Assembly: GCA_965649765.1 (NCBI GenBank) | Contig: OZ287759.1 | Span: 10,912,001 to 10,976,000, forward strand | Reading direction: 5' to 3' | From: Bispira polyomma | Taxonomy: Eukaryota | Length of the DNA: 64,000 nucleotides | Part shown: in pieces, positions 36,201 to 45,200 of the stretch | How positions within the stretch are numbered: the stretch's first letter is position 1 | How the letters are laid out: each line of letters opens with the position of its first letter | Program-made: the position numbers and the translations under genes | Notes under the pieces: model-generated | Databases searched by the model: none | Told to the model about the DNA's origin: nothing | Seen by the model: the letters and a program-made list of their open reading frames with translations, nothing else

Positions 36201-39200
36201 CAACATACCCTTAGTAAAAAAAAAGTCACCCAAATTTGGAACTCTGAATCCTTGTGATGATAAACCACAGACCTGTCCTGATGTGAAGGCTGATTGACTG
36301 TTAACTCTTTCTGAAGGATTCTTTTTAAACGAGGAAAGATTTATGTAATGCTATACTCGGTATTATTACTGTACAAACCTCCCGTAAAATATTTTGGAAG
36401 CATGGTGAATAATACGTTAATAACACAAAAGTAGGATCTTGTTGTCTCCCATAGCGTAGTAGTTCTAGAGTTGGTCTGGTGATCAGATGGTCCCAGGTTC
36501 AACTCCCAGTTAGGAGGGTAGGTCTGGTGATGATCGGAAGGTTTGTGCATACAAAAATTTATAGCAGTCTGCATTTTGCACGGAATGTACATTGGTGAAA
36601 GTTTGATCTGTATGTCATTGTTTAAGCTAAACATTTTATACTTTTATATCCTGATAGATCAAGTGATATACTGTACTGTCCTTAGGAAATTAAAAAAAAA
36701 TGACAGGAAGGCACTAATCCTAGATTTTAACGTACTGTGTATTGTCTTCCAACCACCCTGAAACAGATAGGAGGTTTAGTATGCATACACACCCACTGAT
36801 GTATGGTTGAACCACTCTGAATTTGCAGGACACAAACTAGCAAAAATAGAAGAACTGGCAACTATTGCCTATATTTTTAGAATTTGACAACAATATGCAG
36901 TAAAATTTGTCCGCAATTGAACTCCCATATTCTTGGGATGGTACAAAAATGGCGTTGACAAAAGCACTGTTAATTTATTAATATTAATATTACCAACACA
37001 GCTAGCCACTACAGTTCACTCGTGGTCTCTTTTTGTGATAAAAACTGTCCATGTGTTGGAGGCGCATGCGCAGTAACCTGGTTTCTTGCATCGGCAACAG
37101 AGTACTTGTTCTAGCTTTACCTACAGTTCACTGAATACTTGTTTAATGTCTGTGTCTGGTAAAGGTGTGACGATTAGTTAAGATAACGATGCATCAATTC
37201 CTTTTGACAAATATAGCCTCTTCAACTCAAAGACTTCAAGAAAACGTATAAATAAAATTGTAACTTTATCTTCATCTTACACTTCAATTTGAAGTTATTG
37301 GGTGTATTAAGCTTCCTAGACAAATCCTTATAGTGACAAAAACACAGACCTGTACAGAAATCACATGACTGACAGATTTGTTACACACACTGAGTGATTT
37401 GACTTTATAGACTTGAACTTGAAAAAGGGACAAAGTGGGAAAATTCTTTGTTAAAACCTAAACTAATTAAATGTAATCGTATCGAGGCTTTGCGACTCGA
37501 TCATGTATATTTTACTCCCTGTTGGTCGAATTTTAATACCAACCAAAAAGCACGTTAACGTCTGAGACAAATATAAATGATTAGATACATAAAATTGTAA
37601 CATTATGAGGTTCTTGGACATGTGACAATGTTTATAGTAGGTGTGAAACGGTCATCAAAAAGGCGGCCCAAATAATCGCTAGTATCTAACCGTATTGAAA
37701 CCGGGTACCTGCAAATTTGGTATGCACTAATCTTAAAAACCAGTCTAACAAAATGACGGCTGATGTAAAAGTCTATTGAAAAACAAAGGCAAATATCTGG
37801 GGGAATATTGTAAATAAGAAGGAAGATGTATGTTGGGAGCCGGAATTAGACCAAAGTTATTGTTTTGATAAGTGAATTAGGATTATAAGCGATAATGTAA
37901 TATTTTTACTACAAAACATATACCTTTTCGAGTCCCTGAATAGCAACTTTCACTCCAGTTTCCCCACAAATATGACCCGTTGTGGAGTAACCTAGTTTAT
38001 GGGGAAATGTATTATGGTCTGGCAATATATATTGACCTCGTCACACGGCAGTTATAGTATGTATGTACAGTGATTTAGGCTACCTTGTCAAATCCTTATG
38101 ATGACAAAAACACAGACCTGTACAGAAATCACATGACTGACAGATTTGTTACACACACTGAGGGATTTGACTTCAAAGAGTAGAACTTGAAAAAGGGACA
38201 AAGTAGGCAAATTCTTTGTTAAAACCAAACTAATCCAATCTAAATTCTACTGTGGAAAATGAAACAAAATAGTCAAGTTTAGGTATACATCAGTTTAAAT
38301 TGGTTTTTCATCGAGTTTGTGTGGGCGATAATTAATGTAAATGACATATTCAGACTCACGGCCTTTAGTTTAGGGTTTAGTTCTAATTTTAGGTATCTAT
38401 TATAAACATTTTCCCTCATAGTTTCTAATATTTACAAAGATAGTTGTCATTTTGTCTTTGTAAATATCTATTCTTACATTTTATACTAACATTATGGGTC
38501 CCTGGATTGTAGACAGTGCTCACACAGGCAATATTTGTTGGGTCCATCACATATCTCTTATATTATGTATTTAGGGTACCAGTGCACACTGGGTGTGCCA
38601 CATTTTGTTTTAGACAAAGATATCGATCACTGCCCTGAAGTGTTTGGAACCACCGGTTAGCGATAATATTGATATTTTACATCTAAATGCATATCCTATT
38701 TCTTTAAAACATTGAAAATATATGTAAGTTTAACAATATAAGAAACAAAATAGCATACTTCTACAGATTTTGTGTGTATGAGTTTTAACAGTTTTAGAGA
38801 TCGCATTTCCTGTTGAAAGTTATATCTCGTGTACACACCTGTTATAAGTTTTGCAACAAAACCGGGACTTGAAATGATATGTACCAGATGTTCTGACACC
38901 GGTTTTGCTTTTTGCAAGCGATTACAGCACTAATGTAGTGTGTATTATGGCAAATCCTTATGATGACAAAAACACAGACCTGTACAGAAATCGCATGACT
39001 GACAGATTTGTTACACACACTGAGGGATTTGATTCTATAGAGAACTTTGAAAAATGGACAAAGCGGGAAAATTCTTTTAAAGTCTAAACTAATTCAATCT
39101 ATTCCGGGCTTTGCAACTCGATCATGTATATTTTACTTACTGTTAGCTGAATTTTAGTATGCTCCCCTAAAGTACAGTCACCAAGGAAAAATATAAATAT

Positions 39201-42200: not shown

Positions 42201-45200
42201 ATTTAATGACGTTTGAGGATGTTTATAGGGCTCTAACAGGGTGCCCAGTTGCTGAAGAATAGACTCAAATTATTTGAAAACCATAGTGAAACTATTGATT
42301 CAGATAGTCGAAAATGGCTGTAATTATATGTATGCACTATGTAGGGTGTACTATTATACATTTAATTTAAGCTGTCCTTATCCTTATGATGACAAAAACA
42401 CAGACCTGTACAGAAATTACATGACTGACAGATTTGTTACACACACTGAGGGATTTGACTTTTTGGACTAGAACTTGAAAAAGGGACAAATCAAGCAGAG
42501 TCTTTGTTGAAACCCAAACTGATCTAATCTTTGTAATGATCAAAGTAACAGTGATATGTATTAAATCATAATGATACTGGAGTTTAGAAGTATAAATTAC
42601 TGGGGAAAAGAAAATGTTGGGAATTTGAATACCAGAAATTGTAATGCGACATCACAGATTTACTTAGTTGCAGCAGGATTGGTAAATATTGGATGATTTT
42701 CTGCATCCGATGTCTTCACGTTATGCAAACATAAAAAGACTGCCGTGTGTGTGTGGGGATTGATCAATTACCCAGCCTGTAAAAATCATTATCTTTGACA
42801 CTGATGGTGATGTTGGATTACTACAGTACACAAACTTGAGACGCCATATATTTAATAAATATGGTCATGTTTAAATTTCTATACTTTAACAGTGTTAACT
42901 TACTTCAAGCTTCAGTAGTAAAACAGTCTAAAGGCAAAAAGAGAAATGGGCTGCAGCACTCACGGCTTCTGGTGGGGGTTAGTGAGTGGACGATTCGACC
43001 AACGTCTAAGCCTTCATCGGTCTATTAGCCAAAAGACGTCGATCGGTAAAGATCATCAGAAAATCGATCATTACAAACCCAAAACACGGCAAAGTTTTGA
43101 ACTTCAACTAAAAGATTTGTTGACCTTTTCATGTGATTTAAGATTGTTTTTAAGTCAAATAAAGCAATTTTTGTTACTTTTATATTTGTTTTCGTTTTCC
43201 TCCATTGTTTACCAGAAGTCATATAGGTTAGCGGTTGATACTAAATGTCGAACGTTTGAATTTAACCAAATTTTACCGGATCACAATATTTTCGAACCGG
43301 GATAGCAGGATGGGTAACTTAACAATAAAAAAAGATATATTTAGGTAAATAATCAATTGGAGGTTAATCATCGGACGGACAATAAAGCAATTAATCGACT
43401 TGCAAAATACAGACCACTTTCACTGACTAGCTGTGGTCTCATTTGGCGAGCAATTCCTTTGTTTGTTCACAGCCCTGCTGTTAACGTATGTTTGACATCA
43501 AATCCTTATGATGACAAAAACACAGACCTGTACAGAAATCACATGATTGACAGATTTGTTACACACACTGAGGGATTTGATTTTAGACACAAGTTGACAG
43601 TTTCAAGTAGTGTTGTTAACAATATGCCGCTGTATTAGTTTCTTATGCGTCTCATATTCCTCAAAACCCTCAAATATTTATAGCTTTTACAACATACAAA
43701 ACAACTATTATGTGCAGGGGGGCTCAACATTATAAAAAAACTTTTGAGATGGCATTTCCTGTTGACATTTCCAAGTAGTAAATAAATTCACATTTCATAG
43801 TGGAAAGGTATTTTTCTGTAAACAGTATTATACATGTAATAGGTATATTAGATAGAAATTTGGTAGAGAGTGTAATTTGTGTTAATAAGTCTAACAGTCG
43901 CACTATAGAAGTTTGGATACTAGAGGTTCTACTGTATAGTGATGAGTAAAGCGGTGACGATTAGTTAAGAAATTGATTTATCAGTTTGACTGTGACAAAT
44001 GTAGCGATATGCATCGAATCCAGGCTTTATGACTCAATCATGTATATTTTACTCCTTATTGGACAAATTTTAGTGTGTTGCCCAAAAGCACATTGTTGTC
44101 CAGGAAAAGTTTAATTAATTAGGTAGATATACTTGTAACGTTTGTGTTTGTCTTACATAAGTTATACCATGGGGAAAATATAAAAAAATAGTTTGAGATT
44201 AGGTATGTATCAGCACTATTATGTAGTTAAAATTGGGTTTCCCATGTGGGCGATAATCAATGCAAATTAAATACTACCCGACTCACAGCTTTAATATTAT
44301 GGGTTAATCAGAGACTTTATGATAACAAAGACAGACCTGTCCAGAAGTACATGCTTTTGATTGTCTTACACACACTGAAAGACTCTGGCCCACAGAAGTA
44401 GCTTTGGGTACAGCAGGCCATATTTTAAGAATGTATATGTGATTTGTATGGTTTTAACCCTTTTGAGACTGGGAGACTAGTGTTCCTATGAACTAAAGGA
44501 ACAGTTGCAGATGGCCAGAGTTCCCAAAGACACGCACCAAAAATGATTTGTGGCATTTTATAATGGCTTTGTTTATAAAATTCTAAATTCTATTACTATA
44601 ACATGTTGAAAATGTGCAAAACCTTAGAAAATAAAATTATAAATCTGGGTGTGGACTACTTGCATTCCAATGAATAACAAACTCTGTAAACTGCTTAACA
44701 GCAATATACAGTCGAACCCTTTTGAGTAGAACTCGATTTGCTTTTTATTTGGAGCAAATTCTGTAGTCCCCAATGGTCCTTACCTTGTTAAGATCTACCC
44801 TGTTAAGTGGAGATCCTGCTTCAGTAAATGTATCTATCTTTGTCCCTTTTACTTTGACTTAGCTAGGGGTGGTTAAATGATTCCACTCAGTGTTGATAGT
44901 GGAACCACTCTCAAATAACAATCCTTTATTGTAATTAGTTGGTCAATAAGTGGTTGTAATTGGTGGGTAAATTAGTGGTTGTAATTAGTGGGTAAATTAG
45001 TGATTGTAATTAGTGGGTAAATTAGTGGTTGATGGAAATTGTTATCAAATGCAAAATTACTTCCACTATCGGTCGATATCGGGACATAGGAAGAGAACTG
45101 AAACGTATCTTCAAAGCGAAAAAGATTTTCCGAGAAAGAGAAAGCGAACAAAACCGGAAGTAAAAACCGCTAAATATGTTTAAAAGTGAAATGGATTAAA

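Follow-up and report, generated by a model that had tools for sequence, protein, structure and literature searches.

Nine U25-type box C/D snoRNA copies in one ATP5F1B intron of Bispira polyomma, with predicted dual guides and a proposed release by internal cuts

Animals mainly carry one small nucleolar RNA (snoRNA) per intron, with intronic clusters forming a recognised class (PMC11028025), and this one-per-intron rule exists because maturation is exonucleolytic. How several snoRNAs could be released from a single intron is the question raised by a 64,000-nt stretch of the Bispira polyomma genome (contig OZ287759.1, positions 10,912,001 to 10,976,000, forward strand; hereafter the window), where the last intron of ATP5F1B holds nine copies of a U25-type box C/D unit. 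The answer that we tentatively favour, at a little under an even chance, is that the array would be the main locus in this genome for the guide of the 18S Gm1490-equivalent site, with internal cuts freeing several monomers per intron.

The ATP5F1B exons were mapped by tblastn with single homologous proteins, and the spliced models of this gene and of RPL4, considered below, were searched exon by exon. ATP5F1B extends from ~23745 to 45521 of the window. Its penultimate coding exon (35326-35429, + strand; donor GT at 35430) and its last coding exon (45421-45521, +), which ends with the stop codon, were both placed by tblastn and splice sites and are contiguous in the protein. They enclose an intron of 9,991 nt (35430-45420, +), starting with GT at 35430 and ending with AG at 45420, whereas the other eight mapped introns measure 0.5-3.2 kb. 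An intronic snoRNA cluster is defined by at least two snoRNA genes between adjacent host exons, and here nine C/D units lie between this pair, all on the + strand and therefore sense to the host. The copies are 0.5-2 kb apart and span 8 kb, with copy 9 lying 1,040 nt from the 3' splice site and all nine located 1-9 kb from it. The initial annotation had described just such a nine-copy array within one ~10-kb intron of this gene, and we confirm its units, their places and their sense orientation. By exon mapping the nine copies fall within one intron, and hidden non-coding exons between them are improbable.

We next compared the predicted guides with an rDNA unit taken from the same genome and located by pattern, with 28S numbering that begins at the Rfam start. 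Positions 1434-1444 of the genome's own 18S are complementary to 11 nt of the D' guide (10 in copy 9), which places box+5 on G1437, in agreement with the U25/snR56-type 18S guide of the initial annotation. This site corresponds to Arabidopsis Gm1434, human Gm1490 and yeast Gm1428 (PMC8583080). An identical D' guide is present in the alignments of the Rfam snR56 and snoU25 models. The 11 nt that precede the D box of copies 2-8 also pair with the genome's own 28S at 1464-1474, predicting Um1467 in a region that we take to be helix 43/44 of the GTPase-associated centre, and because of this second guide these copies are better described as dual guides than as plain U25. Over 17 nt, the D guide together with its box is identical to the consensus of plant snoR11/Z151, and there is an A 15 nt upstream of the 28S target U in this genome. 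In Arabidopsis, snoR22 is associated with the pair Am1263/Um1278, and the table of that study shows no human or yeast counterpart of Um1278 (PMC8583080). U1467 is thus the putative equivalent of Um1278.

An Rfam scan of the window at the gathering threshold gave zero matches. Below threshold the scores were 28.7 of 54 bits for snR56, 25.7 of 50 for snoU25 and 35.3 of 50 for snoR11/Z151 (RF00349), the last of these stemming from the boxes and the D guide. Judged by its guides, the array RNA is a putative functional equivalent of SNORD25/snR56 that lies outside the formal Rfam family. The earlier U25/SNORD25-type label is therefore apt for the D' guide, although it overlooked the second, 28S guide in copies 2-8 and the Rfam scores fall short of gathering.

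All units have C/D boxes, a terminal stem and an antisense element of at least 10 nt upstream of D or D', as is characteristic of box C/D guides. Canonical C (RUGAUGA) and D (CUGA) boxes are present in seven of the nine copies, with the C box damaged in copies 2 and 9, while the D' box is CAGA in every copy but the first, where it is CTGA. Across ten copies, the tenth being the lone copy described below, the terminal stem comprises seven pairs, 94% of them paired, with three pairs showing double changes and the best fit at zero slide; it lengthens to ~10 bp in most copies (range 7-11 bp). Of the features previously ascribed to all nine copies, stem and D boxes are borne out throughout, but D' is mostly CAGA and two C boxes are damaged.

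Individually, the copies (all on the + strand; C box start and D box end given in order) differ in their state. Copy 1 (36246-36321; 36254, 36314) is a divergent, single-guide U25-like snoRNA with C box GTGATGA, an 11-nt 18S guide, D' CTGA, a D box and a 7-bp stem. Its best Rfam match is snoU25, under the gathering score, and no convincing rRNA target was found for its D guide. Copy 2 (37322-37400; 37330, 37393) is of the dual-guide type, with a broken C box (ATAGTGA) and one mismatch in the stem, and is a probable pseudogene or weak copy. Copies 3 (38090-38168; 38098, 38161), 4 (38952-39030; 38960, 39023), 5 (40668-40746; 40676, 40739), 6 (41269-41347; 41277, 41340) and 8 (43500-43578; 43508, 43571) are intact dual guides by boxes and guides, directed to 18S G1437 by D' and 28S U1467 by D; the stem of copy 3 reaches ~10 bp, and copy 8 has a long external stem with 28-nt arms that are 79% complementary. 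Copy 7 (42380-42456; 42386, 42449) has intact boxes and guides and a shortened outer stem. Copy 9 (44309-44387; 44319, 44378) is divergent, with C box ATGATAA, a 10-nt 18S guide and one mismatch in its 28S guide, and its stem is retained by compensatory changes. Overall, seven array copies look intact, and their expression is predicted.

To what extent the array is real and unique was assessed at the level of the whole genome. BLAST, two patterns and a covariance model gave ten copies in total, the nine of the array and a lone one 8 Mb away on the contig of the array (C12:2943920; 1400-1590 of the fetched stretch), which lies within a PSMD11 intron beside a long minisatellite. The covariance model, built from the copies and run on the 1.035-Gb genome, matched these ten only, and a random 11-mer from the window is complementary to rRNA with a frequency of 0.0017, which together argue that the array is not a product of chance. 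As the genome searches return ten copies, no source beyond the ATP5F1B intron and PSMD11 was found for the guide to the deeply conserved 18S site. The PSMD11 copy is preceded by tandem repeats of a ~27-nt motif with a likeness to the upstream flank of copies 3 and 5, and neither a poly(A) tail nor a target duplication was seen there. Two further pattern matches were rejected: one for the D guide on contig C10, which covers 8 nt only and is at control level, and the single dual-guide match in metagenome contigs, a chance hit inside a long phage-like coding sequence. Both host genes also carry decayed duplicates of an exon start together with its 3' splice site, placed directly upstream of the real exon (window 32178-32225 and 33094-33313 in ATP5F1B, ~2490 of the fetched stretch in PSMD11).

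An assembly artefact was checked for using unitigs from three DNA-like short-read runs (two samples from one study, which may include the source sample); these de Bruijn contigs are independent of the assembly, and the runs bear on the assembly only. The unitigs tile the unique spacers and enter the cores with zero differences from the assembly, those of sample S1 at uniform low depth, and one contig bridges copy 5 to copy 6 (40693-41306) at a depth as low as that of its neighbours. Since short-read contigs run from core into unique spacer, and once into the next core, the array is not an artefact of assembly and withstands this check.

We then asked whether other box C/D families in the same genome, used as a control and searched by their guides, follow a similar layout. 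Five of five families found have multi-copy introns, while the U15 guide pattern had zero matches in the genome. RPL7A (C9:16398800-16408700, minus strand; a further U14/U24 stretch is also minus) contains four U14 copies in one intron, one of them having a broken D box, and two further copies in the following intron, with none in the upstream part of the gene, together with four U24 copies in one intron and a single one in the following intron. Every one of the six U14 copies found therefore lies in a multi-copy intron, and their cores are 92-99% alike with flanks mostly unalignable. RPL4 (C3:48246000-48253500) has four U18 copies in one intron (2434-4372 of that stretch) and single copies in two later introns, and two RPS5 introns hold two and four U31 copies, respectively. 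In all five families the copies have the sense orientation of the host, and broken copies also occur in the U14, U31 and U18 arrays. At these loci we further observed that one of the single U18 copies (~4650 of the RPL4 stretch) is of a divergent type, that a partial RPL4 duplicate 29 kb from the locus carries another U18, and that there are two RPS5 genes (C9:52013000 and C9:55388000) in inverted orientation, separated by 3.4 Mb and 96-97% identical, each containing six U31-type copies in two introns.

Multi-copy introns of predicted snoRNAs are thus a general habit of this genome and not particular to ATP5F1B. The proposal that snoRNA dosage is tied to an oxidative phosphorylation (OXPHOS) gene consequently loses its ground, since the four other families are multi-copy in introns of ribosomal protein genes. 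Likewise, the comparison of the orthologous intron, which the initial annotation had suggested and which we ran on six other animal ATP5F1B loci (eight fetched stretches, not close relatives), revealed no U25-type RNA, and the last introns measured 0 to ~4 kb. Examination of RPL4 loci from five other animals showed 14 U18 copies with a ~156-nt period in one intron of the first (ERZ25073293, 13380-15960), a spacing that leaves little space for exons between them, and five copies upstream of the first mapped exon in the second (ERZ25069859, 3945-6846; exon 1 not located), where the cores are 91-97% alike and the flanks unalignable. Two of the remaining loci follow one per intron and one is without U18. 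With U18 arrays in two other animals, the multi-copy layout recurs among invertebrate-like genomes. The U18-like core of ERZ25073293 has a different 3' half.

Returning to the ATP5F1B array, self-comparison revealed blocks of up to ~380 nt with 66-90% identity around and between the copies, including a 347-nt block common to copies 6 and 8 and a 324-nt block common to copies 5 and 7. These blocks are the putative mark of repeated local duplication with later insertion of repeats, such as a SINE-like high-copy repeat between copies 4 and 5 (39366-39600, +; very high contig depth with loose ends) that has relatives at 25500 and 28390 in the window. Any two of copies 2-8 are distinguished by 1-6 differences in 79 positions. 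For comparison of core and flank we used local alignments of three disjoint pairs with alignable flanks, a gap-tolerant global alignment having been dropped for flanks as too permissive (random pairs reached 64%). Differences affect 8 of 235 core sites as against 107 of 683 flank sites (3.4% vs 15.7%, p=8.5e-8), and the better conservation of cores over duplicated flanks claimed in the initial annotation is upheld against equal divergence. Furthermore, the eight close copies vary in 12 columns, all of them outside the 30 guide and D/D' columns (p=0.002), and identity drops directly outside the terminal stem.

We consider it improbable that most copies are silent, with cores alike because of recent duplication plus gene conversion, and with one or two copies, such as copy 1 or the PSMD11 copy, supplying the functional guide. 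Damage in two of the nine copies, and the broken copies in the U14, U31 and U18 arrays, would suit such a state, as would the 60 nt upstream of copies 6 and 8, which are 95% identical, as a conversion tract would give. However, the end of identity at the stem, the avoidance of guides and D/D' boxes by variable columns and the covariation of the stems are at odds with silence, as are the U14 cores, still alike though their flanks have diverged past alignment. Gene conversion may contribute to the likeness of the cores but is not sufficient, because alone it would neither stop at the stem nor spare the guides.

If several copies are active, each could gain its own lariat through cryptic non-coding exons or recursive sites, perhaps in isoforms bound for nonsense-mediated decay (NMD). 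This would restore the one-per-intron rule, and single strong acceptor-like sites do occur at 36455, 40177, 41242 and 43473. By a splice-site model that is crude, however, donors, acceptors, pseudo-exons and recursive sites in the array intron number 27, 43, 41 and 1, compared with 30, 63, 54 and 10 on the antisense strand and 27, 60, 45 and 2 in other introns of the gene. The one recursive (AG-GT ratchet) candidate, at 37165, is below the controls, and the intron does not classify as recursive. Acceptors downstream of 22 internal copies from the five families were also no stronger than random (p=0.87), and the gap after copy 2 is without a candidate exon. Copies 6 and 8 have the sites at 41242 and 43473, respectively, 35 nt ahead of their C boxes and within the 60-nt stretch that is 95% identical between the two; no donor follows either site directly. 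Hidden splicing is thus a poor candidate, and the cryptic exons suspected in 35430-45420 find no backing in splice-site counts. Poorer still, to the point of being very improbable, is an internal promoter for each copy. A ~25-nt motif is seen upstream of several copies, with tandem repeats of it preceding the PSMD11 copy, but it is absent from copies 1, 6, 8 and 9, all copies of the five families are sense to their hosts, and the flanking 6-mers common across families are AT-rich words only.

We therefore weighed release by internal cuts against release by exonucleases alone. In the former, the array would have grown inside one intron through repeated duplication in cis, each local event taking in a few hundred bases to ~2 kb. 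C/D genes in general are considered to spread through cis-recombination (PMC11028025). The copies, being sense and intronic and having no flanking motif in common, would be transcribed as part of the ATP5F1B pre-mRNA. Box C/D proteins would then assemble without help from the branch point, aided by the 7-11-bp terminal stems, as suggested by the position of all copies 1-9 kb from the 3' splice site. The usual branch-point zone has its optimum at ~70 nt, and in the families compared the last copies lie 102-1,039 nt from the 3' splice site, mostly outside that zone. After ordinary splicing and debranching, an endonuclease would cut the intron between assembled snoRNPs, and XRN2 and the exosome would trim each piece to a ~70-nt monomer, so that several copies could mature per transcript. 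Candidate cutters are an EndoU/XendoU-like enzyme or unspecific nicks of intron decay. In the frog, XendoU provides endonucleolytic, splicing-independent snoRNA release (PMC10557570), and about seven XendoU/EndoU-family loci are present in this genome (C3, C8, C11), a finding that is permissive only.

Several points weigh against such cutting. EndoU genes are widespread in animals with the one-per-intron rule, which makes the presence of the family weak evidence. Neither a cleavage motif in common nor a U-rich flank was found near the copies, nor was an inter-copy hairpin that could serve as an RNase III substrate. The copies are known from DNA sequence alone, with expression and release predicted, and selection on guides is equally expected if one copy per intron matures. 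Indeed, if exonucleases act alone, an intron would yield one monomer when one copy is assembled and a snoRNA-ended long non-coding RNA (sno-lncRNA) when two or more are; the extra copies would be alternates that make assembly likelier at a great distance from the branch point, and any copy whose guide is bad would be purged as a competitor. The standard DBR1/XRN2/exosome route would then suffice, and introns with two snoRNAs are known to yield sno-lncRNAs (PMC11028025). The decay pattern also fits, with damaged C boxes in copies 2 and 9 but no intact-box copy with a damaged 18S guide. On the other hand, seven intact copies and efficient assembly would lock most output in long RNAs, and U14 was found only in multi-copy introns, as far as searched. 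Such introns hold canonical rRNA guides, among them U14, so that monomeric products are probably required in this genome. We regard exonucleases alone as a rather unlikely explanation. Of the earlier claim that the array needs either endonucleolytic separation or hidden splicing, the need for a route beyond debranching and trimming stands, while hidden or recursive splicing is without sequence support.

Elsewhere in the window, 55804-59830 contains reverse-transcriptase/GIY-YIG type open reading frames (ORFs) in a fold-back arrangement plus a zinc-finger ORF, and exons at 1480-3022 resemble a guanylate-binding protein gene by eye from ORF translations.

The occurrence of U14, U18, U24, U31 and the U25 equivalent at several copies per intron, with signs of selection on several of them, suggests that the one-per-intron rule does not hold throughout the animals and that the described animal pathway lacks a release step. 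From the dual guide one would further expect 2'-O-methylation of a uridine in the 28S GTPase centre that has no listed human or yeast counterpart. As a wider and doubtful proposition, some invertebrates may amplify rRNA guide C/D snoRNAs in single introns as a standing strategy, with a dedicated endonucleolytic release step standing in for yeast Rnt1, and may carry methylation at a GTPase-centre uridine that has until now been mapped in plants. We found no paper, in a partial coverage of the literature, that describes an animal genome in which arrays of C/D copies from the same family are the default arrangement.

In comparison with known systems, the array RNA has the D' guide and 18S site of SNORD25/U25, snR56 and plant snoR19 (clan CL00049, RF01298), but differs in its sub-gathering scores, the CAGA D' box of eight copies and the added 28S guide. 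Its hosts are ATP5F1B and PSMD11, whereas vertebrate U25 resides in a UHG/SNHG1-type gene; similarly, U14 is hosted here by RPL7A and in vertebrates by hsc70/RPS13. Copy 1 resembles vertebrate U25 in its canonical D' CTGA and lack of a convincing D target. Plant snoR11/Z151 and Arabidopsis snoR22 share the D guide and box match and the A 15 nt upstream of the target U, although the 5' half here carries the U25 guide and not the plant one. In layout, the clusters that H/ACA snoRNAs form within introns in Drosophila (PMC3089462) and those of rice (PMC11028025) likewise place several snoRNAs in a host intron, but here the units are box C/D copies of the same family, strung out over 8 kb at distances of 0.5-2 kb, and in an animal genome the habit extends to all five of the families found. 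Sno-lncRNAs (SNORD116 region, SLERT) also arise from two or more snoRNAs per intron, yet these yield snoRNA-ended long RNAs, whereas the multi-copy introns described here are occupied by canonical rRNA guides, U14 among them.

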